Shown here: one piece after another, positions 23,590 to 60,600 of the stretch
How the letters are laid out: each line of letters starts with the position of its first letter
Position numbering within the stretch: position 1 is the first letter of the stretch
DNA from: Paragordius varius
Taxonomy: Eukaryota; Animalia; Nematomorpha
Assembly (NCBI GenBank): GCA_964247055.1
Contig: OZ176051.1
Span: 9,734,001-9,798,000 of the forward strand
DNA: 64,000 bases
Reading direction: 5' to 3'
The notes under the pieces: generated by a model
Database searches by the model: none
Told to the model about the DNA's origin: nothing
The model's input: the letters and a program-made list of their open reading frames with translations, nothing else
Translations under genes and position numbers: made by a program

Positions 23590-24926
23590 CTAAGTGCATT
23601 TTGTTGAATTCAGTAATTTTAAAAGATCCAATACAGAAGCATATCCAAAAATTGCTAAGAAGGAAATTTTATTAAATTTCGGCAAGATGTGTCAAATATC
23701 ACATTCCTAACTTTCCTCAACTTACTGAGAGGTGGCATATAATTAAAGTATATTAATACATTCTACGACATTAATACTGGTCTGTCAGGACGTTAAATCA
23801 GATTTTCTAAAACTTATTAATTAATATTAAAATGTCCACTTATATAATATATTGATTAATTTTAATATTAAATTATTTTTATCTTTTAAACTTAATCACA
23901 CAAGAGGCATTATACTCGGTTTAATATGTAGATATCTGCATGTGTCAAAGAGCTCTAAAATATTTGCCAAATATATTTTTCGGCCCGCCCTAATTTTTAG
24001 TAAATATTATACTGCTATGACGGTAAAGTTAAAAGAATTAGAAATGTTTTACAAAAAAATGGTTTGGAAATCTTCTATCGATATTAACAAGTTTTATGTT
24101 TTTAATTTGACGCCAGAGTGCGATTTTTAGCTTTTATTCTGGTTAATCTTTCTGTAAACCTCCGAAAAAACCTAAAACCTATAAAATAATATATTGCGAT
24201 TAGAATAATCATTATGCTATATTAAAACATAAATTAATTGCCTCGTTTACGTCTATCGTATTTATTTTTATTTGACCTAATATGTGATAAAAATACGATT
24301 TTTTGATTTTGACTAATAAAAAAAATTTAAATAACTTTATTTCTATAATTTTAACCGCATATCTCATTTTATTCTTCATTATTCTGAAGCTTTTGACTAT
24401 CTAATAATATATTATTCATTAACATTTATTTTTTGCTGCGCACCGTTAAACCTTACAAAGTTAGTCATGTCAATACAGAAAACATTTGAATTATACAAAT
24501 TTTTTACAAAAAATCCTATATATTACAAGTACTAATCCAATTAAATAAAAAGAATTTGCGTTTTCATTTTCGAAATACCAAAAATAATAGTTGAATTATT
24601 AAAGGATAATAATTTATGGGTAAATATTTGATTTGCGTATACTATACTGTCATTTCATAGTTTACTAAAGTTAACTAAACAGTGTTAAAGAAAATTCGGG
24701 GTATATTTATTGGCAACGACCCAAAAATAATATATTTTTTAAATATATTTGTTTGACCCGATTTCGCAATAACATTGGAGAAAAATAACTTTTTATTTAT
24801 TTAAAATATGTTATTTTTATGCAAGGACAACAAACAATCCTCCAAAATATCTCAACAAAAATTGTTATACCTCTATATATAACTTGATATATCCAACTAT
24901 ATTGTAATTCGATTTAATTTTTTACT

Positions 24927-27900
24927 ATGATTTTCTTTATTTTAATACCGTTAATACCATTTGTTGGAGGTAATGTAAAATATTTTTACAAATATATTTT
25001 TAAAAAAACTGTTTAATCAAAGTGTAAAATTATTAGTGTAATGTTCTGTTAAATTTGATGTATTAACTTTTAAGTTATATTTAGGTCTTACGGTGATAAC
25101 ATCGCCTTCAGTCTTTGTGGATCGCATAACATATGGACCGACGTCTCAAAAGAATATGGTAATTATTTGGAGGAATCCAACTATTTACTTGCAAGAAATT
25201 GTGCGTAAAAAACTTTATTCGGATGTATCTTTGTTAATCACGATAAAACCAGTACGGATCGATCCAGAGAGTATAATAATATATATATTTCAAATTCACC
25301 CTCAATTCAAACTCACCCTAAAATAAATTATGTGGTTTTTTAAGATTCTTTTATATTTTTAAAAAATAAAATATCGTAAAAATATACTAAAAAAATAATA
25401 ACGAATAGAATATTTGCCCAAAAACACATATTTTGTTTGGGTGAATTCGAATTGCAAATGGGATATATATATAGTCTAATCATTTTTTATTCGAATTACA
25501 GTAAAAATTAAAATCAGGCAGACAAAACATACAAACATAACGACAAATATTTTTGTTTTACTAAATTAAACAATTCACTTTTTTAAAATTAATGTTTTAG
25601 CTCTATAAATTATTTTATTACTATATATAATTAATTGTGTTACGAATATACATCTCTAATGACACTTTGATGTATCAAACAATGATTATATTTAATAAAA
25701 ATCAGTTTATAAAAGTCCAGCGCTACTTTAAAATATATGTTTAATTAAAATTTGACCTTCTATTTTTATTTAATGGATGGATATCTTACTTTTTAATTAA
25801 AATATATGGCATCGTATTCGCAATTTTTACCTGATAAAAATATATATGATTAAATATTATATTATAGAGAAAATGTATTGTATTCCATATTATAAATTAG
25901 CTATTAAATACGAAATGGTAGCATTCAGTCCAAAAAAATCAAAGGTGATCAAATTTACACTCAAGATGACTTATTCGAATTTGCAAGGTATTTATTATAT
26001 TAATTGTACTTATGCTACATATATTTTTTTCCCCAAATTTTACAATTATTTTCATTTAGAGTTGGAATTGAATGCCCGAAATATAAGATCTATATGCAAG
26101 ACTTATATGCTAAAAGGTATTATAGGGCCTGAATATTATATTTTAATTAAAATTCTTATTTATAGAAAACATAACTGCACCGCTAATTTCCTACAAAGTT
26201 TCCAATGTCACTTCTAGAAAAAATTATGTACTTAAGATGTATCATAATTCAAGTAAAATTTCTTCAATATTTTTTGCTATAATCGATATGTAATTATTTA
26301 ATTAACCATATTATACCATTTACGATTTAAATTCAATCTAAAATTCAAATTGATCCTAAAAATAAATTATGTGTTTTCGAACTTATATAACTCATACTAT
26401 TAATATAAAATATATTTTTACCACATAGTTCATTATTTTTTACCTATTATATTAATTTTACACAGAATTTTATATAATTATATTATGAAAAATAAAAGGT
26501 AATTTTTAATCTTGAAAAAGAACATATAATTTATTTTAGAGTGAGAATTTAAATTGTTCAAGGGTGAATTTATATTGTTCAAGGGGTTTAAACAATAAAT
26601 GGTATATTTTTGGGGTGTAGAATATGAAAGAACTGGAAAAATAAATGCCGGACTTGTCATAACATCTGTTTCTCCCAACAATACCATATACCTAGTTGGA
26701 GCTACAAAGAAAAATTCTACCCATACCTTTCACAGGGTAATCATGAAACCCAAACCACAACGCATAAAAAGAGGTGAGTTAGAGGGGTATTTGGGGTTTA
26801 TCTTAGATTAATTGTACATTTTTACTGTCTATCAAAAACTCAATAATATATTTACTGTTCATGTAGCTGATATGACAGGTATAATATGGCATGATTGTGT
26901 TAATTGTTAAACGGCATAACTTTTTTTGTCACAAATACTAACAAAATATCATTATGAAATATTTTTTTACCTAAATTTAACCTATCCTATTATATCTATT
27001 TTTTAGATTTATTCACTGGACCCTCTGAAGATGGTATGATATTAATTTTTATATGTGCTTTTAAAACATAAATAATAATGTGTCAATTAAATAATATTTT
27101 ATTTTTAACATTTCAAGATCTGCGTGAGTCAATTTTATCCTAAAAATAAAAAAAATTGCCAATCTTTTATTTAACTATTTATTTTATAAATATAGTTGAC
27201 TTCTTAGATGTTACCAATGATGAAATAAACGAGGTTCAAGGTAACAATTTTTTTTATATTTTGGTTGAGCAAATATGAATGTACATAAATAAAATTTGTA
27301 TAAACAAAACTCAAAATTCTAAATTTGTTTCGAATTTGGGTTATATACATAGTGGGGTTAAATATAAATTCAACCCTATGATAAGTTTTTTTCAAAAAAT
27401 ATCGAAATTCGGGTTTGGGTTAGCGGTTATCATACTGCAAAGTGCAATCATAACGCGAGCTTGTTTATAAATTTTAGTCAAATAAAAATTTTTGAACAGT
27501 CATGAAACTATATTAACCAGCTACCCTGCTTTTTTTAATATTAGTATGTTTATTTCATCGTGCACTGTATGAGTAACATTGCTATAATTAATTATTGCCT
27601 AATAGTAAATACAACAAAGGGCAGTATTATTGGCTTATAGTTATTCACTTTTTACTATTATTAACCAATAATATTGCCCTCTTTGTTGTATTTTGGCAAT
27701 AATTAATAACTTTCTAGCAATGTATATATACTTACTCATACTGTTATATTTTATCCATAAAATTGAAAGTATGAAATTTGCATTGTCGTAAAATATCAAT
27801 ATTATTTATTTTATGGTTAAGGCCCATTTATTTTTACGTACCGTATTTTAAGAATATATATATATATATCTTAGTTAAATTTTTTTAATAATACAATTGA

Positions 27901-30180
27901 TATGTAAGTAATGTTATCAAATTCTATCCAAATAATATTTGTGGTTGATTATACGATCACCCCATATATTTCATTTCTCGTGTGGTCATCTAGAAGTGGA
28001 AGAGAGCGACGTTGAAAGTGTGTATAGCGATGTGAGTGAAGCATTTAGCGATTTGCTGGAGGAGGAATCTGTGGTGGATCCAACGATAGAAGTTAGAGCA
28101 GCCCTACCATTACCACCGCCAGATTGGGGTTGGTTAATAATAAAAAAAGCAGAAATTATCTAATTTTTTTAGTTGGGTTAGGTTAGATTGATTGGACAAT
28201 ATTTGTAAAATAGTTGATTACTGACTGGATTGTATTTAATGTAAAATTATTACTGCGAATAATTATCCTTGCGGTAATATATACCATTTACACCTCAAAT
28301 TCCCCATTATTCATTAATTCAATGATTCACCCTTGAAGAATTTAAATTACCCTCAAACAACTCATACCTAAAATAAATTATGTATTTTGAATATTAAAAA
28401 CTAACTATACGTTTTATATTTTTAAACTATAAAATTTCGTTTAAAATAATTATAAATTTTGCCATAAAGAAATAATTCTTATTAATGATGAGTTATATTA
28501 GCCCGAAAACACGATTTATTTTTAGGGTGAATTCGAAATGTTCAAAGGGTAATTGGAATTGTTCAAGGTGAATATGAAATCAAGTATAAATGGTATATAC
28601 CAATATCAGGCTTTATGATTCATTAAAATAAACATTCATACTATATCATTAAATTATAAATTATTTTTTAAGATTTGGATTGATTTATAATACCTATACA
28701 TTATCATATATTCTTTGTTACAAATTAATGTAGTAGACGATTAACTTTTATATTATAACATATTTTATATAAGGTGTAATATGAATTGATAACCCAGATA
28801 TACCATTTACAATTCAAATTAACCCTTAAACAATTCAAATTCCCCCTAAAAATAAATTGTGTGTTTTTGGCTAACATATTCCTGATTAATATGAATATAT
28901 CTTTATGGCATAGTTTGTCATTTTTTAGTATTATTTTAATTTTAAACAAAAAACATATTTTATTTTAGGGTGAATTTGAATTGAGTGAATTTAAATTATT
29001 CAAGGGTGAATTTGAAGTGTAAATGGTTTATTATTTAGTTTTAGATACTTTAGATTGCAAAAAAATATATTGCAAACTTAGCATTTTTCTTTACGCTGTA
29101 ATGATTCTTTGAAAAATTTGAACTTTTTTACCATTTCATTTTTTGTGAGTCATTACATTTTGGGGTTTGGTATTGAACCCAAACTTATATATAAACTACT
29201 ATCAAAGTTTTTTGGTTACATTATGAAACATTGTTCTCCTGTTATCAATATAAATTATTTTTACAATTCAGCTTAGAGCAGGGGTGTCGAACACGTGGCC
29301 CTCCAAGTCATGTGTGGCCCGCGAAAAATTTGAAAATTCATTATTTGAAAGCAAAAGCTTACAAAGTCTAAATAATGATATATCTTAAACAAACTTTCTG
29401 ATAAAAACTCCATCCGACTGGCAATGAACTAAATGTTATATTGTGTTTGCATTTTACAGTCTTATGTTTGAAATCATATTTATGACTGTTCATATATGTT
29501 TCAAATACGCCCGCGAAGTCATTTGTGTTGACGCCCCTGTTCTAAGTCAAAATTTGATTCAACCTGGTTTAGAATTAATATATTAAAAATTTACTGTTAA
29601 TTGAATTAGAAAGCTTTCTAAGCTACTTATTTTTATATTAACTGTCATTAAACACTTCAAAAAATGGCGGCGAAAAAGTTTGAGATGATTTATTATCATT
29701 TTATAGGTTAAATTGCATGTTACAGTACAACTTTACCTATAATATTTTAGGATCTACAAAATTAGATCAATCCAATTTTAATAACAATGTCCGTAGAATC
29801 TTGAAAGTTATAAAACAACGGACATAACAAATTAAAACTTTTTTGAAACCTAAAATTAAATATCTATATATGACTTTTTTATTATTCATGATATTACTGA
29901 AACTTCATTGTTGTTCTTTCAAGCCCCTTTTAATTTAAGGCGATAATTAAATAGAGACAAAGCTTTGTAGTCTTTTGAGTATTTAATATATACCAAATTT
30001 ACATTGATTATGATTTTAATTATTTTAGATCAAGTTTCAACAAGTGACGGTAAGATTTTGTAACAACATTATATAATTATATTTTTCATTTTAATTTTTT
30101 TATAATTCAATAATTAATTTCTTTTATTGTGACCTTAGAATTTTTATCCGAAGCTAGCGGTATTATTACATAAATATATA

Positions 30181-30220
<40 letters not shown>

Positions 30221-33200
30221 CATATTGTGGTGTTGAGATATGAGAATATTATAAATAACAATCTAATTGCCATAAAAATGTGGAATATATAAAAAGCATA
30301 TGATTAATACTTTGAATTCTAGGGTTTAAAATTTGGACATCACGCAAAAATGAAATCATCATTTTGAAATTACTGTAAAATAACACAGTATCCACAAAAA
30401 TCCCGACGAAGCATATACATATTTTGTAGGAAAATATCAGGATTATCACGGTGATTTTGGTTTTAGCTTTTACGAATAATTTAAGAAAGTTATTTATGCT
30501 TTTGTGGTAAGTGCTAACCATGTCAAAAAGGGCAACATTTGCGCACACTTTTTTAAACTTTTATGCTTTAAAGTGCTTATAAAAATAAAGCATTTTTTTT
30601 AAAAAAAAATAATTTTTAGATGTGGGCTAGGAAAGTCCCATTTTTTGCTCTCCTAAAATGGGCTAGTTGTCTAAAAAAAGACTCAAAACTGTAATTGTGC
30701 ATTAAATAAATATATGCTAAATTTAATATTAGCCAAAAATATTTTTAAAAAAGCACACTTTTTTAAATATTAAATTTTTAGCAAAATTTTGTCAAACTTC
30801 GTACTGACGGTTAAATATATGGTATTATATAAACCTTATATAATTTGAGGATGCTGAACATTTCTTTTGCCTCATCAATTTGATTAAATTGTAATTCTTA
30901 ATTATGTTATATATCGATTGTGGTTAAACTAAATTTCACCAAAATTTAAATACAAAACCTTTAAATAAAAATTCAGAATAGAAATATTAATTACAGTATG
31001 TATTTCAATGGTGGCTTATTGCAAACTATAGTAGGGCAATTCGCGCAATAGACAACAAAATGTTGAATAAACAATTTTCCTTTCTTTTTTCCATACACTC
31101 CTGTGTTGCAAATTGCACTACTATACGATGAAAAAATAAGCTACCATTAAAATGCATATTGTATATCTGAAAGGTTTTTTGTAATATCTTAAGCGTTTTT
31201 ATACCGTTTCCTTTCCTCAGTATAGCATGAAATACGCTTCAACATAAATAAATTTTGAATAAGTTATATAACATTTTTCAGTCAATAGTAACACTTTTTT
31301 AACCAAAGCACCGTTTTTACAACCAAACGCAACTTAGTTCCGTTTGAATAAAAAATGTTGCGGCGTTTGGTTGAAAAAGTGTTTCTTTTGACTGAAAATC
31401 GTATATGCATTTTTAAAAAGTTAGTTGATATCAAATTTTTGCATATATTTAAATTTTTTATCGCGAATCCCGGTTTTCGCCTTTTCCTAAGAGACCTGAC
31501 CAATTTAAAAGAGATAAAAAAATTTGGACTTTTAACCCACATCTAAAAATAATTTTCCACATTTTTTTGCATTTTATATGTACTTTATATGATATATTTT
31601 AGTGATATTTTTTTGAAATGAAGCATTTAGCTTTCACCAAAAATTTTTTTTAAAAATTTAACCATTTCCTAATATGGAGCACTTAAAACAAAATTTTAAT
31701 AACTTTCTTAAATTACTCAGGACCAAAACATAAAGCACCCTTCCTGATACTTCCAATCAAATTATTTAGGATATTATATACCCCCGATTTAAAACACATT
31801 CTACTTTTATCATATTTTATATTGGCACTTTTTATTGAATTAAAAAATATTTTGTGACAAAATATGAATCAATTCACAATATACGTTTTATTAATTTTTT
31901 TGTAATCCACAGCACAGTTAATTACAGTAAAAATTAAAATACGGGCAAAACGTATAGAGACAATTTTTTTATCAAAATACAACCATACTATTCAAACATT
32001 AATTTATCCTATTTAAATCATTTAATCACAATCATAAAATATGTAATTGAGTGTGTTATCAATATACATGTCTATTTCATACTTTAGACTTTAAAACAAT
32101 GGTTATATAAAAAAAATAGTATAAAAAGTATGATTTTATTCTAGAAAAAAATATAGGTCTTTATATTTTTACGTTTTGTCCGTATAATTGTTTTTACTGT
32201 AATATCATTAAAAACCAGTCTCATATTTAATTTGTTGAATAATTTAATAAAACCGGGTTAAAAAACTACAAAAGATAATTAATCATTAATAATTTTTTAT
32301 GCATTTTTATAGAAGTAGATTATTGGGCCGATGTGTCGAGTATATACATTTAGTTAACCTTTTAGGCATCGCATCTGAAGATAACGCAGGTAAAATAAAG
32401 TCTTAAAAATAAAAAATAAATATATATCAAGGTAACTAGCCATAAATTGATTATAATTGGCATTACATGTCATATTTATGAAACTTTAAATTTTGAAAAT
32501 TTACATTACATAATCAACATATTATACATTCATTTCGTTAATTAAAAAAACTTTTTCTCATTCTCATTATTATCCTTAAAGAAGTATCCACCATTCTGAT
32601 TCCCAATATCTATAATTTATATTGGATGTTGAAATCTAGCGGTAATGCAGGTTTCAGGATAATCTAAAATTTTAATTCACCAGCAATAGTTAGCTGTTTT
32701 TTTATTGAATTTCGCAAAAAATTTGATTGATCAATAAAAATTCTAAGCATAATACTATCAAGATAAAATAATAATCAATTTAAAGAAAATTGAATAAGTT
32801 TGGAGTTATATTATATCACCTTGGTACCTAATATATATTTATGCATATCAATATGGGTATAAATAACCTCTCAATAAATAAGTCACAATCGATATAAATA
32901 TTGATATAATTACTTTAACATGTATTTAATTTATAAATGAAAGATTCAAATAAAACTTTAACCGTATACGAATGTAATTATTCATGGTTATCAGCAGTCA
33001 TCATTAAAAGAAGTTAGCTGTTTAATGTTTAATAATATCATCGGTATTATTTTTATAACTATTCGCTTAAAATTTAATAAAAAAATTATATGTTATACAT
33101 TTAATTTAGTGTATATACATATATCCTATATAAATTTTAGTAATAAGGTCACGGTGTATTAAATTATATTTTGATAGATATGTTTAAAATTTTTGTGGTG

Positions 33201-36200
33201 ATTTTAATTTTGGTTTTACCATTTTAGGAAATGTGCTAAGGGTGATTTCTCCATATCATAAAATAGCAAAATGGCGCTTTATGATAAGTTTTTTTACATG
33301 CTAAATTCTTAATCGACCTGGGTTGTAAAAACCTTACATATTTATTAAAAGTAGTGCTATGAGATTTTATATATAAGGTAGATTATGTTAAATGTTTCAT
33401 AGATTGTTTTAAGAATCAAATTTTGACAAAATATTAAAAGCATGTTTTTGATGGGGTTTAGAAGTATGATGGAAACGGAAAATAATTTAAATGTTCCAGA
33501 ATAGCTCTTCTAAATAATAAACTTTTTATCACGATAGTTTAAAACAAAAGAGTTAAAATAGTACCAAAAATATCAATGAAATCATAATTCAGCAATAAAA
33601 CCTAAACTTTTAATTGCTACAAGTAATTTTTGCCAATCTAAAAATTGAATTATGCAACACTGTCTAACAATATTTTAGCGTGTACTTATACCGTTCCACT
33701 TTAATTACTATAAAGTATGCAACAAAATATAAAGTGCTGTTTTATGTTTTGTTACCTAATCTAATAACGCGCAATCTCGGCTCTTTTGCGTTAATTTAAA
33801 AAAATGGCTCCTTTTAATAAATCAAACAAAAAATATAATTTTGAAAATATACAAAATATAGTTATATATATTTATAAATATTAATAAGTATAAATTAAAG
33901 CATTTATACCAATTTTTTAATAGGCGTTAACGATTTGTTAAGAAACATATATACAAAAGTCAAATATTTTTTTAAAATATCGTATACCCCAATTTTATGA
34001 GTGTAGTGTATAATTTAAAAATCGGGATATTTTTAAACCTTATATAAAATGAATTATCATATTATATCATTTTGTTTTGTATTGTACATATCTATATTTA
34101 GCCATCGATGGATTGGAACAGGGTAGTTATTAGATATAAATATTAAATTCATTATTTATATATGTGTTTTACTTTAAAATTGTGTAGGTTTTCAATTTAA
34201 GTGTTATTTTATTTATAAAATTTCTTAAGTTGTGTGTAAATAACGGCCATTTATAATAATTTATTTTATCTGTTCAAATAATTTTGCTGAAAAAATTAAA
34301 AAGTTTAAAAAATACGTCAAAAGTTTAAAACAGCTGTAAAAGCGCTCCTTAAACCGTTTCCAAAACGGTCACAATATTAATAAATTTAATTGCTGAATAA
34401 ATCATGTTTAAAGTAGTATAAGTATCGGTTTTTTATATTTCCAAACCTATAAATCTACTTTTGAAGTTTTAAACATATTTTGTAATTATTTTACTCGCCA
34501 AATACAAATCTTCGAAAGCTTCTAGTATTTTTTTAAAAAAAATCGTTATTAATCACTAACTAAAATGATAAAACTTTATACATTAACTCTATTTAAATTT
34601 TTGTTTGAATCGAGTTTAAGTAAAAAAAATTATTTTTTCATGCAAAGATTTGCAACAAATGGCTAATGTCGATGATAATGAAGAAGGACCTACAGATTTA
34701 AACGGTGGACCATCCGAGGAAAAACCGGGTTTAGTAATAATTTAAATGTTTCCAGATAACAATCAAAACAAGCAGGAAGAAAAAGATGATAGAGGTAGGT
34801 TATATTGTTATGTTAAACATTATAAATATAAACAGTTTAGAGCAAGGGTGTCCAACACGCAGTCTGCAGGCCTTATGCGGCTTCTTTCGGCCCGCGAAAA
34901 TTTTTTAAAAATAATAGAAAAATTTGTAAATATAAAATTACTATTTAATTTTAAGTATAATTGATATATAATCTAACATATTTAATGACAATGAGACATC
35001 AAAAGTGGTTGAAAAAATAGTAGTTTATATTGTGTTCGTAAATTTTTTGCATTCTTATGTATGAAATCCAAGTAATAATGCCCATTTTTAAATACGACCG
35101 ATCAGATATTTTTCTATAATCAGCCTGCAAAGCAATTTTTGTTGGATATCCATGGTTTAGATCTTTTTTAATTAAGGGTTAAGATTTAAATTGTATGAGG
35201 AGTTGTGAATGCCTTTACACTCGCCTGCTCATCGCTGACTCTGATGAGGAAAATTGCGTAGATTCGGCGTTAGAATTCTGCCACTTCACTGCCGAAAAAG
35301 TCCGGTTTTCTTTATTATATCAAAACAATTCACGTTATTATTTGTAACTTGATACTCTTTATTGGGTGGTGCCTATTTTAAACCAGCTAACTCTTATTTG
35401 AAGTTATAATTGTTAGTTAAACTAATAAGTGACATCTCTTAATATACAGTAAAAATTAAACATAAGACAAATGCTGTATTTAAAAAACCGGTATTTTTAT
35501 TTTTTTTAATACAAAAGTGTTTTTGACCTCAAGGATTTTATAGAGATATTGGTAAACACACAATAATATATTTTACAATATATATACATTTATATATATA
35601 TATATATATATATATTAATCACGTTCCTCACTAATCTTATTGTTATATTAATCTTCTATAGTAAAGATATCGGAAAATCAACCAAATGAAAATGTTCCCA
35701 AAGAAGAGGGTATCATAATCATTTATAACAAAATATCTAAATTGTTAAATTATAAAATTTGATCGACATCTTTAGAACCCAAACAAGGATCATCAAATGA
35801 GAGTAAGGAAAAATTTATTTTATTGGTTTGAGGATAAAATTTAGACATTTATAGTACATATCCGCTCAACTAAAAAATATAGCTATATTTTTTTTATTTT
35901 CTAGGAAATTTTATTTATTAATCCTATTATATTTATATATTATATAATTTAATAACTTATAACAATTTGAACTCAGGGTAGACACCCTATGGATTACATA
36001 ATATAATATCGAACTAAAAAATATTACCCAAACAGCTGAAATAGCAAAAAGAATCCTAATAAATGTATATGTCTTAAAATATTCTGTATAAAAGCAATTA
36101 TAGCCTGGACATTATAATTAAAACTAATGGCGTTCCCTGCAGAATAAAATTTGACCTTAACTCTTGTAAAGGACTTCATCTTATAATACTTACGAAACCA

Positions 36201-39200
36201 TATATAAAAAGTGGCTTCAACGGAAAATATCTCATATTATAAGACCACATGGATTAAATTATGGTTTAGGTCTACCCCTTAATAAGTAAAAAGTTTTAGT
36301 TTACCACCTTAACTCTTAGAAAAGGATTCGTCACCATTAGAAATGATTTTTTTAAAGCTAGATCAGCTATAATACAATAAGGATACCTAAGTCAGATGTT
36401 TCCTATAGAAACAACTGTTTCTGTTTTATTAATTATGAATTAAAAAATAGCATTAATTATAGCTTTGATTTAAATAAACATGGTATTTTCCAAAAATTTT
36501 GAATATAAAATGGCGTAATAGTTTGATGTAAAACTTTTGATTACAACAAAATTTAATATAGATATTTCGGCTCATCTATATAATTTTTATTAGTAGCATG
36601 AATTTAAATTTTCGTTCAGTAGTATTAAAGTTTTAACTTAAAAGGGGTATTTACCCCTATTAATCGAAATGTTAAGTTTCTTTTAAATATATATAAATGA
36701 TTTATAGCGCAGTTATTTTTATGTTTTAAGCATAGAAATTATACTTATAAATTTTTATTATAGGGAATGAGCCACGAATTGAAAATAGTCCCGAAGATAC
36801 AAATGACAAAAAAGGTAAATTAGTAAAACAATAAATGAATTAATATTTTTTTGGATAGCAAAATTATAATTAAATTTTAATCTTTATATGATTTGTATTT
36901 CATTAGCGCAAACTAAACCCTTTAACTAGAGTAGCCCCATTTTTCTATATTTTTCTTAAAAACTTCACAAGTGGTAATGTTTAACCATTAACCATCTCAA
37001 TCTCTAAATAGGTATAATTTAGTTAGGATTTATGAGGTTTATATCCCTAAATTTAAAAAACCTCATTCTTTGAGAGCAATGCCAAAAAAAATATTTCTAT
37101 TTTTCTTAAAAAATATTGAATAACTCTGAAAACGATTTTTTTGTCCATTTTTCACTTAAATTGCATAGAAGATAATATAATTGAATTTTTCATTTTTTTT
37201 AGTCACATTAAAATTGCCGGTGACACTTTATTTTTTCTTCATAATTTCGATTAAATATACTCGTTACAATGTAAAATTTCTGAATGTGTAACAGGCTTTT
37301 AAAATGTCCCATGTTTCAAGGCCAACAATATATAGAAGATTAGCATATGTAATTTACATATTTTGAAAAAAAATGTTTTAACTTTAAATATATATAATAA
37401 TATATATTATAACTAATTAATGAATTCTAGCTATTATATCTTAGTATGGGCCCAGTACACAAAATAGGGGTTTATTAAATAGTAAAAAAAATATATATTT
37501 TAGATACTAACATGTATCTGAATTTGTTTTTGGGCTTTGCTTGGTCAAAATTATCATTTTGTGGAACTACTTTCTCTTTGTCATAAAATAGCAAATTGTG
37601 CATATTTTGCTAATTAATTCTTTTAATTAAAGCTAAATCATTTCAAAAATATCATTAAGTTAAATTAAATTTATACTTAAAAAAACAGTATTTATAATAA
37701 ATTTAAATTGTAAACAGAGGCAAGTCGCACATTTGCGTAGATTGGCTGAGTAATGCTAGTTTATGACATTAAAAAATAGTTAAAAAATTTTCTAAATTCC
37801 TTCTGAAGAGGGCTTCATCTTATTTAAGAAATATGGTGGAAACGGTAAATTAATAAAATTTGCAATACTTTTACAATATATTTCGATGATGCTGAACATT
37901 TGTAACACCTCAAAATTTTGATCAAAATATTTTGCTTATTTAATAACAAATTAAATAAATGTGTTCCAAAAATTTTAACTTTAAAAAAGATAAACCTTAA
38001 AAATATGAGGTCATAAAAATTTTAATTAAATAATAAAAGCATTCAAATACCTTATCCATCAAATTTTTAATTTTTAATTTTTCGTAAAAAAAAATATTTT
38101 TTGATATTCAAACTAGCATATGATAAAAATTGTTCACCCACAATCTCAAATTAGGTTTTATAGTGAGTGGCCCAATTTAAGGGCATTTAAAAATTTGCGA
38201 CTTTCCGGAGTTCCGACTAACACTTAGAATTAATATCAGTTTTATAATTTATAATAAATAATGTTATTGGAATTAAGCATTTGGCTTTTACTCAATTATA
38301 TTTTATGTATGTAATTTTGATTTTCAATATTGTGTAATTGCCGCAAAAGTGCAATTTTTTTGGATTACTCGTAAGGCTAAACCAAAATCACCATAAGATT
38401 CCTGATATATGTATCTATTAAAATATATGTAGCTCCTAATATATTTTTTTATAATGTGTTATAAATTAAGTCTAAAACTAGGCACCTAAATTGATCCATC
38501 TTCACTATTTTTCATAGCAAAGCAAATTTAAATATGAATTAATTTAATGTAAAAATTGAGAATTTTTATATGTTTATTAGGGCTTGGAAACAAAACCTTT
38601 ATTTTGATTAACAGTTTTTCCTATTCGATATAAAAAATTTGAGGTAACTGGACAAAACTATTCCTTTAATCTGTTTTATTAACATGTATGATGTATACAT
38701 TATATAGTGGAATTACCCAAATCACCAAGGATCCCTAGAGCCAGGCAGATTAACCCACAAATACCTAGGGTATTAAATAACGCACTCACAAACGCTATCT
38801 CAAGTATTTTTATTTTTAAAATAGCTTAATACCATATATATTCTATATAACTTATATACAATATACATATATTGTAATAGCACAACTGAGCGCTATAGGT
38901 AAACAAAATTAATTTATATTAAAAAAATACTATTATATTCATTTTGCTTTTTTAAGCTGGAAAAGGTACCATGGGTGCTCTTGTTATAGGTGGAGGTTAA
39001 ATTGCATAATAAATCATCTTAGGTATCTTATTGACAGCAATCGGAGGTATTATTAATTAAAATTTTAGGTGCGATTGGGACCGTTTTGGGTGCAACAAAA
39101 TCAACTTTTTTACGTAAGGCATCTTTATTTATCTATATTTTATATACTGCACATTGCGTTTTAAATAAAAAGCTTAATTCTTGGATAGGTAGGGTGATGG

Positions 39201-39229
39201 GTTTCAGCATTCGAAAAGAGAAATGGTAA
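24927..39229 (+). CDS. Orphan micro-exon gene: signal peptide, FN3-like/beta-rich ectodomain, RIKR site, acidic microexon stalk, Gly-rich hydrophobic helix, basic tail
   Basis: Exons, all joined in phase 1: 24927-24969, 25085-25270, 25868-25987, 26060-26116, 26166-26252, 26621-26773, 26867-26878, 27007-27033, 27118-27123, 27208-27240, 30029-30049, 30139-30159, 32313-32339, 32366-32389, 34102-34122, 34648-34728, 34756-34794, 35662-35709, 35776-35802, 36764-36814, 38957-38995, 39023-39046, 39069-39113, 39189-39229. Weaker candidates: 27994-28128, 29751-29792, 32582-32641. Starts MIFFILIPLIPFVG; ends GALVIGGGILLTAIGGAIGTVLGATKSTFLRRVMGFSIRKEKW*. Confidence 0.75.
25281..25472. mobile_element. Short MITE of the 1204-1565 family, in an intron of the micro-exon gene
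   Basis: TTCAAATTCACCCTCAATTCAAACTCACCCTAAAATAAATTATG ... GGGTGAATTCGAA; starts about 10 nt after the donor at 25271. Confidence 0.7.
26312..26606. mobile_element. MITE of the 1204-1565 family
   Basis: TATACCATTTAC ... AAATGGTATA; internal sequence TAAATTATGTGTTTTCGAACT shared with the 1204 copy. Confidence 0.8.
28278..28599. mobile_element. MITE of the 1204-1565 family
   Basis: TATATACCATTTAC ... TAAATGGTATATA. Confidence 0.8.
28799..29030. mobile_element. MITE of the 1204-1565 family
   Basis: TATACCATTTACAATTCAAATT ... GGGTGAATTTGAAGTGTAAATGG. Confidence 0.8.
29279..29539. mobile_element. hAT (Buster-like) MITE
   Basis: CAGGGGTGTCGAACAC ... GTGTTGACGCCCCTG; both flanks have a central TA but are not identical. 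Confidence 0.7.
30994..31161. mobile_element. Palindromic Tc1/mariner-type MITE (TA flanks)
   Basis: TA|CAGTATG ... CATATTG|TA; second copy at 43138-43327. Confidence 0.75.
31925..32199. mobile_element. Tc1/mariner-type MITE (TA flanks)
   Basis: TA|CAGTAAAAATTAAAATACGGGCAAAACG ... CGTTTTGTCCGTATAATTGTTTTTACTG|TA; related ends near 25499 and 35448. Confidence 0.75.
34843..35154. mobile_element. hAT (Buster-like) MITE
   Basis: CAAGGGTGTCCAAC ... GTTGGATATCCATG; 8-bp flanks GTTTAGAG/GTTTAGAT. Confidence 0.8.
36480..36671. repeat. Degenerate half of the TTAA-type MITE
   Basis: Resembles 23380-23589 (AAAATGGCG..., GGGGTATTTACCCC, AATCGAAATG|TTAA). Confidence 0.55.
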
Positions 39230-39309
39230 AAGCCATATACGAGTAGCGAATGCCTTTAACACATAATCAACAAAAATTTTTTTTATTATTTTTAACATAG
39301 GTAAACTAA

Positions 39310-41385
39310 TACTGTGCGCAAAAAAGGGGGGTAAAAAATAAACAAACATGATTTTTATCTAGAATAATAAGAAATTCCTTGGAAAAGGAGGACCCCAAAA
39401 ATTTTGGGGCAAAAATGCGCCCCAAAATAAAAATATTCCATTTTTTCGTTTTTGACTAGTAGATTTTTGTCCATATTTTTAAAATTTATTGAGCAAACAT
39501 AATAAAACTTTTATATATTATATAAAACCAATATATTCTTAAAAATACATAAAATTATTTTAAAGTATCAATAATTTTTTTTATTCCACAAAAATAGAAA
39601 TTCGTAAATTTTATGACATTGTCAAAATATATTATAAAAAAATATTTGTAAGAAATCCATATTGTTATTATTATTTAAGTTTATGACTTATATATAACAT
39701 ACCAAAGAGTTTGTATATATAATAAAGAGTATGTATCCTTTTAAGTACTTAAAAAATTTGTATTTTTTGAAAAATTTTAGCGATTTTTGTTGCATTTTCC
39801 TCATCTGCTTCTCACTGTTTCATAAATACAGTATCAGTAATCCGCAATTTTCAAATGCGAATACTTAAAAATCCAATAAAACTTCCAGATTATGAAATTC
39901 CCTTTACTTTGGATAAAAGTATATATATATATATATATATTATATAACATAGTTAATAAATTCAATTGCAAATTGAATAAAGACCTTTTTTGCTATATAT
40001 ATGGAAGGTATCATCGCCCTACAAATTTGATTTAAATAACTGAACAAATAATTACCTATTACAACATGTATTTTGCTAAGAAATCAGTTCATTACAAGGA
40101 AATATGAGCCCACAGCAAGGTAATTATACTAATTCCGGTGGAGGGCTACAGACCAAGATGGAGAACGGTTCCATCAAACTCTCAAACATATAGAAAAAAA
40201 CTATACTAGTTCCAATAGTTGGTGAATACTATTGGAATCACTTTATGTCTGACTAATATATTCATTAAGTATAAATAAATTTAAATTCTTATATGAATTT
40301 TAAGTGTTGTTGTTGGGTTAGACTTGAAGAGATGTTGCAGGAGCAATTTTTGCAAATGAAGTTTGTATTTGACAATATCTTGATAAGACAGGAACATTTA
40401 TATTTTAAAATTTTGTAGAAACCTAATTAAATATTCTTATTGCAAAATAATGCTAAAAATTCTATCGAATAAAAATATATCCATTTATTATAAGTTTTTC
40501 AATATAAATAATTGTAATAATTGTTAGATTTATAATTTGGCAATAGAGTTTCTGGAAGTAGATTATTTACAAATGTCAGAATAATTTTGGTGCAAGGAAA
40601 ATTCTATTTTGTAAAATTACATGAAGAAAATATACGTGAATACAAATAAAATTTTACTTAAAAAGCTAAATATAGTGTATATAGCAAAAAAAGCTATTTA
40701 TATTTCCGATGCTGCTTTCTGTATATCAAGTTTAATTAATTTTATTATCTATAGATTAAATAGTATATAAACATTTATCCAAAGTAATGTAATGAGAATT
40801 TCATAATCTTGAAATTTTATTGGTTTTTTCAGTATTCTTGAAAATTGAGGATTACTGATACTGATACTGTATTTATGAAACAGTGAGAAGCATGTGAGGA
40901 AAATGTAACAAAAATCCCGAAAATTTTTCAAAAAATACAAATTTTTTGAGGGACTTAAAAAGATACATAGCCTTTATTATATATACCAACTCTTTGGCAT
41001 GTTATATATAAGTCATAAACTTAAATAATAAAAACAATATGGAGTTCTTACAAATAATTTTTTTATAATATATTTCGACAATGTCATAAAATTTACGAAT
41101 TTCTATGTCTGTGGAATAAAAAAAATTATTGATACTTTAAAATAATTTTATTTATTTTTCTTAAGAATTAATTAGGTTTCATATTATATATAAAAGTTTT
41201 ATCATGTTTGCTGAATAAGTTTTAAAAATATGGACAAAAGTCTATTTCTAGTCAAAATGAAAAAATGGAATATTTCCATTTTGGGGCGCATTTTTGCCCC
41301 AAAATTTTTGGGGTCTTCTTTTCCAAGGGATTTCTTATTATTCTAGATAAAAATCATGTTTGTTTATTTTTTTGTGCGCACTGTG
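39310..41385. mobile_element. Long-TIR (~610 bp) DNA transposon derivative, probably Chapaev3/CMC type
   Basis: 39310-~39925 is an inverted copy of ~40765-41385. Ends (T)ACTGTGCGCA ... TGCGCACTGTG with TAA on both sides. Core remnant GNMS..., DQDGERFHQTLKHIEKNY (40151-40204), then EYYW. Confidence 0.7.
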
Positions 41386-57663: not shown

Positions 57664-60600
57664 ATGCCTTCGGAAGCGAAAAAGAAAAAAGATGCAAAAA
57701 AGAAAGAAGCCGCAAAACAACGTTCTGCTGGAGCAAAAAAACCCAATACTACTGCCGCAAATGAAATCCCCGCTACACAAAACGGAACGTCAGAAATATT
57801 AAATGGGATTGAAACATTAGATATAAATTCAGTTTCTCCTCGAAGTGTTACGGGAGTTTTAGCTTCCCATCCAAAAGGCAGAGATATTAAAATTACCAGC
57901 TTATCTATTACATATTATGGAAATGAATTGTTAACCGATTCAACGCTTGAACTCAATTATGGCAACCGATATGGGTTTATTGGTAAAAATGGATCAGGTA
58001 TGTAATTTTTTTCCTATATAAATATTTTAATAATCACATATTATGTTATAAATAGGTAAGACAACACTCTTGAATGCCATTTCATCTCGGGAATTACCTA
58101 TTCCAGATCACATTGATATATATCAATTAAGCAATGAGATGGCCGGTAGCGATAAAACAGCCATTCAATGCGTATTGGAAGTTGATGCAGAGCGATTAAA
58201 ATTAGAAGAGGAAACTGAGTTATTGGCCCATGATGATACCCCAGGTTTTTATATTATTAAAAGTTTAGAAGTTATTTTCTTTGACAATGATTTTTTAAAA
58301 AATTATGATTTTATATAATATTTAGCTCAATTTTTCTTAGAAATATAATGAATAAAATATTTTTTTCTACTTATTTTATCAAAAATTTTAGGGACTAAAA
58401 TTGAAGTGATAATGGCATTTTTGTACTTTTGGGAATTCAAATTTGACATTTCACTAGATACTTTAATAATTAATTTAGAAATTATAATATATTTGTTATT
58501 TCTCATAAACTTTTTTTGATAAATATTTGTTGTACATGATACTATATATTATATTGCAGAAAGTCATCAACGCCTATTGGACATATATGAACGATTGGAA
58601 GAACTTGATAGTTCAAAAGCAGAAACGTATGCCGCCGGTATGTTACACGGGTTAGGTTTCACAAAAGAAATGCAGCAAAGAGAAGCCAAACATTTTTCAG
58701 GTTTATTTTTTGATTAATTTTTTCAAAATTTATTATAACTTTAATTACCATATTGGTTAAATTTATGGGTTTTTCCATTACTTTTAAACGTATTATATTG
58801 AATCTTGTGTGGCCTTTTTTCTTTTACTCCCAAAAATGTGAGTAAAAATGGTGCGCTTTTTTTCGAGCTAATATGCTTTATGGTTTTATATATCCTGTAT
58901 ATTCGGCTTGGTTTTATTAATAATGTGTAAAAGATATATAATTCTTGGGGAAAGTTTAGTTTTTCTTTGATTTTTATTGGTAAAATATCTATTTGTAAGT
59001 AATGTAGCGATTGTACCATATCCAAATAACTTTTAACAACTCTGTAGTAGGCGTATATTCGAGTTTTATATTGCTTTTATGTTAGGTGGTTGGAGAATGC
59101 GGATATCGCTGGCACGTGCCCTTTACCTTAAACCGACACTCCTTTTGTTGGATGAGCCTACCAATCATTTGGATCTTGAGGCTTGTGTTTGGTTAGAAGA
59201 GGAATTGAAAAAGTTTGTTTATATATTTTTCCCATTTATAATATTTCTTTGAGATTAAGTAAATCTAAGAATAAATTTTTAAAGTGTGATACAGTCATGT
59301 ATCCTTCATTTTTCAAAAATTTATTTTTTTCGGTAAATGGGTATAAATATTTGGTAAAGAATGGAAACAAGAGCTTTATGGTATTAACAATGTCATATTT
59401 ATTAAAAATATAAAAATTACCATAGAGCTCTTGTTTTTTCCATTCTTTACCAAATATTTATATCCACCCATTTAATGAAAAAAATATAAATTTTGAATAA
59501 AATAAACGGTACATGACTGTATGTATTTTTAAAAAATGACATAATTAATTTTCAATAACCAAAGTTATGTAAATTAATTGAATTATTTCTGGACAACTAA
59601 ATTTCGAATTCACTATATAATATAATTTTGACCCATGTTCGGGTAAGTATTACTTGCGTCCTTATGCTTAAATCCTTATGCCTACGTCCTTATGCTTACA
59701 CTTTTGAATAAAAATAATACATTCATCATAAGTTTGCTCCTAGTAGACTTATTAAAATTTCAAAGTGGCCTAACTTTAAAAATATTGTGAATTTCTGAAT
59801 TCTGTAAATTGGAGGAGAAAAAGTAAGGTATATTTAACAAATAATTTATAGGTTTGAGTAATGTTGCTTCAATCTTTTGGCATTAAAAGGGGTTTACACA
59901 ACCCCTGTTAAAAAAATAGAAAAATCCTAAAACATGCATACAAAATCAAAAGTTTTTTAGAAGAAATAGGTATGCATTTTATCCAACTATATTTTTAGAT
60001 TTTTTTGAGTTATCAAAATTGAAATATTTGCATACTCTGTGAAATAAAAAAATTACCCAGTTTTTGAATTCTTTAAATTGGAGATTAGAAAATAGTATAT
60101 ATAACAAATTATAGTTTTTAGAAATTGGAATAACCTCATATGCATCTTAGTGAACTAAGCTTCTTTAAAAAATATATTTGGAACACACATTCAAAATTTT
60201 TTAGAAGATATGCAATTGATTTAACTAATATTTATTTATTTGTTGTCAGAGCAATGCGTTAGTTTGTATATAAGCGTAATATTTATGATGCATTCCTTAA
60301 ATGTCCGCCAATTTTCACCCTTCATTTTGAAAACGCCATTTTTTATTACATCCTGATTTATATCCAAACATGCAAAACGAGGCCCGTGATTTGTTAATAA
60401 ACGTTTTAAAAAAGTAAAAAGAATTTATATTTCATAGATACCCTATATTGTATTCAAAAAGAAAACAAATCCAATTCGAGTTAAAGAAGATTGGGAGAAG
60501 CTTTATTTAGAAGTGAAAAAGGAATTGGATTATGACATAACATTAAACCAAATTATAAAAATTTTTAATAATATCAAGTACACTTTAAAGAAGAAGATTC

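Follow-up and report, generated by a model that had tools for sequence, protein, structure and literature searches.

A candidate micro-exon-rich gene of the hairworm Paragordius varius, with all introns in phase 1, predicted to encode a single-pass membrane glycoprotein

Introduction

The micro-exon genes (MEGs) of schistosomes are built from 10 to 20 very short symmetric exons (6–81 nt, mostly about 15 nt), encode a small secreted product of 189 amino acids (aa) at most, and have been described as a family specific to Schistosomatidae. In aphids, the bicycle (and megacycle) genes contain many micro-exons, and their internal exons nearly all start at codon position 2, which is equivalent to phase-1 introns; the salivary effectors encoded by bicycle genes are secreted and carry paired CYC motifs. 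The present report deals with a locus of similar appearance in a 64,000-nucleotide stretch of DNA from the hairworm Paragordius varius (Nematomorpha; GenBank assembly GCA_964247055.1, contig OZ176051.1, positions 9,734,001 to 9,798,000 of the forward strand). This whole stretch is called the window hereafter, and all positions are those of the window. Between 24927 and 39229, a micro-exon-rich gene very probably exists. In the reading that we consider probable, a single + strand gene encodes a 410-aa single-pass type I membrane glycoprotein.

Small symmetric exons are also found in NCAM (muscle-specific exons of 15, 48, 42, and 3 nt), CD45 (exons A–C), troponin T (acidic 5′ mini-exons), and chicken BG (21-nt heptad exons), where they are used in combinations and supply the flexible or acidic stretch that separates folded or anchoring parts. 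Phase 1 is the usual phase of animal signal-peptide and extracellular-module exons, as is familiar from the work of Patthy on exon shuffling, and uniform phase 1 is therefore not in itself a special device.

Structure of the candidate gene

The exon chain was rebuilt from sequence alone, taking the ATG at 24927 as the start and seeking AG/GT-bounded, phase-1-open islands of the sizes listed in an initial annotation of this DNA. For each large exon this search left one candidate or close to one, and the small exons came out as a consistent series. The rebuilt chain agreed with the initial annotation in the presence of 24 AG/GT-bounded islands at the claimed positions in one open frame, in the internal exon sizes, which were identical one for one, and in the named peptides (the hydrophobic start, KPQRIKR, the Gly-rich helix, and the RRVMGFSIRKEKW end). 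The claim that all introns are in phase 1 holds for 23 of 23. The gene is also missed almost entirely by the open reading frame (ORF) track, as that annotation had said, with just four gene fragments in the ORF list.

The 24 joined exons, each bounded by AG/GT, comprise 1,233 nt or 410 codons with a lone stop at 39227–39229, and the gene spans about 14.3 kb of the + strand. Intron lengths range from 22 nt to 2,788 nt. Four introns are ultra-short (26, 27, 27, and 22 nt) and AT-rich (GC 0.09–0.23, compared to 0.31–0.50 in the neighbouring exons), and the frame requires their removal.

The exons are listed below. Ranks are those of a frame-blind ranking in which AG..GT islands of at least 18 nt were scored for the match of their donor, the pyrimidine content ahead of them, and their GC contrast to the flanking sequence, the best one being kept where islands overlapped. 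They are out of 2,497, except for the 6-nt exon, which was placed in a 6–100-nt ranking that took in 1,981 islands.

Exon 1, 24927–24969, + strand: ATG and 14-residue hydrophobic signal-like peptide; donor GTAATG, phase 1.
Exon 2, 25085–25270, + strand: 186 nt, first part of the ectodomain; acceptor TAG, donor GTATAA.
Exon 3, 25868–25987, + strand: 120 nt; in-frame join.
Exon 4, 26060–26116, + strand: 57 nt.
Exon 5, 26166–26252, + strand: 87 nt; sequons NIT and NVT.
Exon 6, 26621–26773, + strand: 153 nt; KPQRIKR at its end; strong donor GTGAGT.
12-nt micro-exon, 26867–26878, + strand: acceptor TAG, donor GTATAA; flanking introns of 93 and 128 nt; frame-optional; weakly supported.
27-nt micro-exon, 27007–27033, + strand: peptide LFTGPSED; rank 9.
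6-nt micro-exon, 27118–27123, + strand: donor GTGAGT; flanking introns of 84 and 84 nt; rank 3 of 1,981; weakly supported.
33-nt micro-exon, 27208–27240, + strand: alternative acceptor 27196 gives 45 nt, also in frame.
21-nt micro-exon, 30029–30049, + strand: acceptor TTTTAG, donor GTAAGA; rank 7.
21-nt micro-exon, 30139–30159, + strand: rank 35.
27-nt micro-exon, 32313–32339, + strand: followed by a 26-nt intron (32340–32365).
24-nt micro-exon, 32366–32389, + strand: rank 3.
21-nt micro-exon, 34102–34122, + strand: rank 5; GC 0.52, compared to 0.13 in its flanks.
81-nt acidic exon, 34648–34728, + strand: contains an in-frame ATG (34659); followed by a 27-nt intron (34729–34755); rank 400.
39-nt acidic exon, 34756–34794, + strand: rank 36.
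48-nt acidic exon, 35662–35709, + strand: rank 126.
27-nt exon, 35776–35802, + strand: preceded by a 66-nt intron; rank 89.
51-nt acidic exon, 36764–36814, + strand: rank 1, the best frame-blind island in 12.5 kb.
39-nt exon, 38957–38995, + strand: start of the Gly-rich predicted membrane helix; followed by a 27-nt intron (38996–39022); rank 14.
24-nt exon, 39023–39046, + strand: middle of the helix; followed by a frame-shifting 22-nt intron (39047–39068).
45-nt exon, 39069–39113, + strand: end of the helix and start of the basic tail; donor GTAAGG; rank 22.
Last coding exon, 39189–39229, + strand: basic tail; stop TAA at 39227–39229; within ORF 39086–39229.

Among the larger exons, exon 2 comprises 62 open codons in DNA where about 8.8% of random codons are stops, as estimated from base composition. 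Exon 3 is one of two 120-nt phase-1-open AG/GT islands in 25271–39300 and the sole one in that part of the gene. Exon 6 is the sole 153-nt candidate; it lies within the ORF 26599–26811, and its unspliced frame stops at 26809–26811. For exon 1, 12 ATG-started phase-1 candidates were present in the 3.4 kb that precede exon 2; the one chosen is both the closest to exon 2 and the most hydrophobic. Since AT-rich DNA often encodes hydrophobic peptides by chance, this assignment is made with moderate confidence.

Introns 3 (25988–26059, 72 nt) and 23 (39114–39188, 75 nt) have lengths divisible by three and contain no stop. Retention of either intron would keep the frame, and retention of intron 23 would lead to the same C-terminus.

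Separation of the exon chain from chance

The region 26774–39300 contains 290 symmetric phase-1-open islands, so the bare existence of a chain proves nothing, and frame-blind tests were therefore used. Among the top 20 islands of the + strand, 14–15 had a length divisible by three and 12 were open in phase 1, compared to about 4 of 20 expected from the phase-1 background of 0.19–0.21 (binomial p 6e-5 to 2e-4). Read on the minus strand, this DNA gave 6–8 islands divisible by three in the top 20, with at most 5 open in any phase. Nine of the 12 phase-1 islands on the + strand are model exons, either exactly or with the variant acceptor 27196 (the variant island 27196–27240 ranks 11th after de-duplication). 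The second-ranked island, the 77-nt block 32313–32389, consists of two model exons plus their 26-nt intron and is frame-compatible only without these AT-rich 26 nt (GC 0.23). Of the top-20 islands that are not model exons, at least three fall in dispersed repeats. The frame-blind result was robust to changes of the weights, provided that GC contrast was included.

Splice sites of the 17 model micro-exons were also compared to those of 203 decoy islands of the same class. The base at donor position −1 was G in 13 of 17 model micro-exons versus 23% of decoys (p 4e-6), donor position +3 was a purine in 15 of 17 versus 48%, and acceptor position −3 was a pyrimidine in 14 of 17 versus 45%; the pyrimidine content of the tract was 0.65 and 0.50, respectively. 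Furthermore, a codon-position model trained on HSP60 and exons 1–6 preferred the phase-1 frame in 15 of 16 micro-exons versus 48% of decoys. The codon-position score of the exon at 35776–35802 favoured no frame.

The C-terminal helix provides a separate line of evidence. A six-frame translation of the window contains only six Gly/Ala-rich hydrophobic octapeptides, of which two, 97 nt apart, are in the helix exons. The helix is encoded in three pieces that occupy two different frames, and joining them needs the loss of 27- and 22-nt segments with GC contents of 0.22 and 0.09. Collectively, for most islands the signal quality is above chance and specific to one strand and one phase. Most of the islands very probably represent genuine exons that share one reading frame on the + strand, and the statistics support a + strand gene in which the C-terminal 60% of exons are small, symmetric, and phase-1.

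Predicted product

The translated chain divides into five parts:

Residues 1–15: signal-like peptide; hydrophobic, with a Kyte-Doolittle peak of 2.5 (a heuristic measure).
Residues 16–216: putative ectodomain; basic, isoelectric point (pI) 10.2; 36 K+R; two Cys; four N-x-S/T sequons, all in 137–198.
Residues 212–215: RIKR, the last codons of exon 6, at the boundary of ectodomain and stalk.
Residues 217–365: putative stalk of 149 aa; pI 4.05; 43 D+E and 9 Pro; grand average of hydropathy −1.5.
Residues 366–390: predicted helix of 25 residues, 8 of them Gly.
Residues 391–410: tail of 20 aa; 6 K+R and 1 acidic residue.

Only two hydrophobic peaks are found, at 19-residue windows starting at 1–8 and 365–374, and the helix ends 20 residues short of the stop. 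If the two halves belong to one transcript, the layout is that of a type I single-pass protein, with a signal peptide, a lone C-terminal helix, and more positive charge past the helix. We infer that the pieces are spliced as drawn into one transcript and that the product has this topology and is glycosylated. The initial annotation had described the N-terminal region as N-glycosylated and beta-rich. The open frame of this region was recovered, while glycosylation has a weak basis in the sequons (4 versus 2 expected, p 0.12, not significant) and the beta character a similarly weak one in a small excess of crude strand propensity.

At the stalk junctions (introns 6 to 20), 8 of 15 split codons encode Asp or Glu, because the exons end in G and start with A. 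The two stalk halves have a short G-P-S-E-D/E motif in common (p 0.002), and exon-to-exon similarity at the DNA level is weak (best z 4.7, with matches scoring 18–23). The shared motif was considered too little to claim duplication of stalk exons. An internal duplication of the ectodomain was rejected as well, its halves being without similarity (p 0.36).

These features suggest how the protein might work. The signal peptide (1–15) would direct the chain into the secretory pathway and be cleaved off. A basic globular ectodomain of about 200 aa, encoded by five ordinary phase-1 exons, would be held off the membrane by the acidic 149-aa stalk, which is presumably disordered or flexible and is encoded by about 14 symmetric phase-1 exons of 6–81 nt. 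The Gly-zipper-like helix, split by the 27- and 22-nt introns, would anchor the protein and leave the 20-aa basic tail in the cytoplasm; Gly-rich helices of this kind pack against partner helices in other proteins. A furin-type convertase may cut after RIKR, so that the basic ectodomain would be shed and an acidic membrane stub left behind. Finally, exon skipping could vary the length of the stalk without loss of frame, a possibility rather than a finding, because every stalk exon is symmetric.

Comparison with known systems

Compared to schistosome MEGs, the hairworm gene exhibits several shared features. A signal-peptide exon, whose product is recognised here by the same hydrophobicity heuristic, is followed by a run of very short exons (6–81 nt in both) that are multiples of three, and the introns are long in the middle of the gene and shorter toward its ends. 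Both kinds of gene are missed by ORF finders and automatic annotation, and both belong to parasites. However, exons of 36 nt or less (11 exons) make up 20% of the coding sequence here and those of 81 nt or less 49%, and the ectodomain half is encoded by exon 1, exon 4 (57 nt), and four internal exons of 87–186 nt. Furthermore, the predicted product is a 410-aa membrane protein with a 25-residue helix (366–390) and a basic tail, and four introns are only 22–27 nt long. Thus, of the proposal that this is a MEG-like gene, the micro-exon architecture stands, but the short-exon share and the small secreted product of the MEG family are not found. By gene structure and by the size and kind of its predicted product, the gene falls outside the schistosome MEG family.

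The bicycle genes of aphids resemble the hairworm gene in having many micro-exons, a single intron phase (phase 1, in 23 of 23 introns here), and an N-terminal signal peptide. Both are also without detectable sequence relatives and recognisable by gene structure alone. The hairworm product differs in that it has two Cys, no CYC motif, a predicted membrane helix, and a large ectodomain that is not encoded by micro-exons.

The linker or acidic segments of NCAM, CD45, and troponin T may provide a closer functional analogy. In these genes and in BG, 3–6 such exons occur within known families, whereas about 14 are found here in an orphan gene that also contains introns of 22–27 nt.

Weighing of alternative explanations

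Several results weigh against a single gene as drawn. Exon 2, the sole piece given an exhaustive sequence search (phmmer, 1.84 billion representative proteins), found no true relative. The species' RNA-labelled sequencing runs contained almost none of the 31-letter words sampled from 24800–27300, the stretch with the N-terminal exons. When the splice-consensus score was used alone, it did not discriminate between the strands, and the frame-blind signal thus rests mainly on GC contrast. The codon-position test is partly circular or confounded, as acidic-looking peptides had been picked in the initial annotation. Taken one by one, the exons of 6 nt and 12 nt do not rise above chance despite good sites and short introns; the region 25271–39300 contains 26 phase-1-open AG-N6-GT islands and 17 islands of 12 nt. 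Further symmetric islands of equal quality are present at 27994–28128, 38881–38898, 37809–37844, and 38708–38803, and the exact exon set is therefore uncertain. RIKR arises in 6.6% of shuffles of the ectodomain and stalk residues, so that its position exactly at the boundary of the two is suggestive but no more. To these points must be added the sequence around the in-frame ATG at 34659, which has A at −3 and G at +4 and could thus start a second gene.

Two genes at this locus, which we regard as rather unlikely, would comprise a gene for a secreted basic two-module protein (exons 1–6, perhaps with the micro-exons up to 34122) and another starting from this ATG and encoding a 128-aa tail-anchored protein with an acidic N-terminal region, which would be cytosolic, and a C-terminal helix 20 residues from the end. 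Tail-anchored proteins have no signal peptide and carry a helix within about 30–40 residues of their C-terminus with basic residues after it, and the helix and basic residues found here have that arrangement. The 81-nt exon and the later exons also form a compact 4.6-kb unit, and the acceptor ahead of 34648 is AAG, in an exon with a rank of just 400. This low rank is explained by the weak donor GTTTAG and probably also, in part, by the 27-nt intron, which puts the next exon into the flank window. Moreover, each of the high-ranking islands at 27007, 27196/27208, 30029, 30139, 32313/32366, and 34102 is symmetric with an open phase-1 frame, and so needs a coding partner both upstream and downstream. 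No stop-bearing terminal exon for the first gene was identified in 27.2–34.6 kb. Exon 6, with its phase-1 donor, and the exon at 34648–34728, which is open in the phase-1 frame only and divisible by three, fit together without extra assumption, and a single gene linking the exons up to 27.2 kb to those at 30–39 kb would be the most economical reading. Another doubt, that exons 1–6 alone are real and end at the stop at 26809–26811 as a secreted protein of about 227 aa, with the rest of the chain fitted to chance islands, draws on the 290 symmetric phase-1-open islands available in 12.5 kb and on the fact that the ORF of exon 6 does continue to that stop. We consider it very improbable in view of the strand- and phase-specific excess among the best frame-blind islands, the G at donor position −1 (p 4e-6), the Gly-rich helix in three pieces, and the donor of exon 6, one of two GTGAGT donors and thus the gene's closest match to the animal consensus.

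A further proposal concerns what a single gene would be for. In MEG-like diversification, the stalk micro-exons would be skipped in many combinations to generate variants of a surface protein at the parasite–host interface. The 17 exons that lie between exon 6 and the last coding exon are all symmetric and in phase 1, so that any subset keeps the frame, and the organism is a presumed parasite. However, symmetric exons permit variants but do not show them, and three of the 17 encode the predicted membrane helix and are not freely droppable. Phase-1 symmetry is normal for animal extracellular modules, and variants of a low-complexity, acidic stalk would differ in length more than in epitope. We therefore consider diversification of this kind improbable, and equally improbable an independent origin of a MEG-like system in a third parasitic lineage, in which a variable subset of about 14 frame-neutral exons, some of just 6–12 nt and some with introns of 22–27 nt between them, would give stalk-length or epitope variants of a cleavable, host-exposed ectodomain. 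Most simply, the micro-exon design may be how this genome fragments genes for extracellular proteins, which would account for it without any device dedicated to variation.

Searches for relatives and sequencing runs

Apart from the phmmer search described above, a word-index sequence search yielded no relative, and an atlas look-alike search gave no lead. Pfam searches with four single exons and two intronic ORFs returned noise only, with no match to an FN3 or Ig profile. The phmmer match P0001, a repetitive translation of 4,487 aa aligned over five stretches at 24% identity, was rejected as an artefact, and no transcript-derived protein was among the exon 2 search results. Within the window, tblastn of the ectodomain found only the self-match and no paralogue, and no second Gly-rich helix was seen near the neighbouring orphan gene at 41.9–46 kb. 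Exact-sequence look-ups with a 123-aa ORF and with the first exon of HSP60 matched no record. Within the limited collection of literature that was searched, there was no paper on micro-exon genes in Nematomorpha.

Two sequencing runs of unknown kind contained 20–24% of the sampled words, which could reflect exons or thin DNA coverage. Three runs under other organism labels (X5, X6, and X7) contained 5–18% of them; these could be close relatives or host samples, or could contain shared transposons.

Additional islands and surroundings of the gene

Some of the further symmetric islands deserve a description of their own. The islands 38881–38898 (18 nt), 37809–37844, and 38708–38803 are phase-1-open, in the frame-blind top 20, and outside the chain of the initial annotation; the first of them ends 58 nt ahead of the first helix exon. 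Intron 10 (2.8 kb) contains a unique, GC-rich (0.47–0.58) acidic ORF of 74 codons at 27939–28163, with no Pfam match and no second copy within the window. Inside it, the 135-nt AG/GT-bounded segment 27994–28128 is in the phase-1 frame of the gene and has a stalk-like composition and a weak donor (GTTGGT), with read-through leading to a stop at 28161–28163. This segment could be a missed exon or an alternative end, and the true exon set may be larger than 24.

Repeats are found within and next to the gene. A dispersed family is represented by 28273–29034 and by copies at 1200–1570, 25285–25454, and 26312–26569, in introns 2, 5, and 10 and elsewhere in the window (identity 67–85% over longer matches and up to 94% over short ones). 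A GC-rich element of about 75 nt, which looks like a small mobile element, occurs in two copies with 74% identity over the alignment, at 29270–29340 (intron 10) and 34838–34905 (intron 17), and explains two high-scoring non-symmetric islands. Inverted repeats of about 170 nt with 92% identity (39333–39500 and 41204–41372) lie around a segment of about 2 kb that starts about 100 nt past the stop codon and is probably a DNA transposon with long terminal inverted repeats. The sole AATAAA noticed by eye soon past the stop (about 39338) is inside the left arm of these repeats.

The composition and repeat load of the window, which has about 25% G+C all along its 64 kb, agree with a published hairworm genome (26.9% G+C, 64% repeats, and 10,320 predicted genes). 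Its other recognisable genes and elements are as follows:

HSP60 and HSP10, 16.0–21.6 kb: ordinary animal genes, head to head.
Retrotransposon pol, 49.4–53.2 kb.
ABCF2-like gene, from 57.7 kb: ordinary animal gene.

The 58-nt intron 1 of the ABCF2-like gene (57999–58056) interrupts the codon for the Walker A glycine in phase 1, so that phase-1 splitting at G/GT is also found in a conserved housekeeping gene of the window.

Implications

The locus is distinctive by its combination of an ectodomain, a convertase motif, an acidic stalk, a split helix, and four introns of 22–27 nt. Three extremes of splicing would meet in one gene, namely exons of 6–12 nt, introns of 22–27 nt, and introns of 2–3 kb, which would make it a compact test case for exon and intron definition by the spliceosome at both size limits. 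The locus also illustrates how a gene finder or ORF track can under-count genes in such genomes, the annotation of that published hairworm genome listing just 10,320.

If the proposed gene is real, hairworms would be the third animal lineage with same-phase micro-exon genes, after blood flukes and aphids, and this design would here be coupled to an ordinary folded ectodomain and a membrane anchor. For the biology of the parasite, the gene would provide a candidate orphan protein, shed or kept at the surface, that may contain a convertase site.

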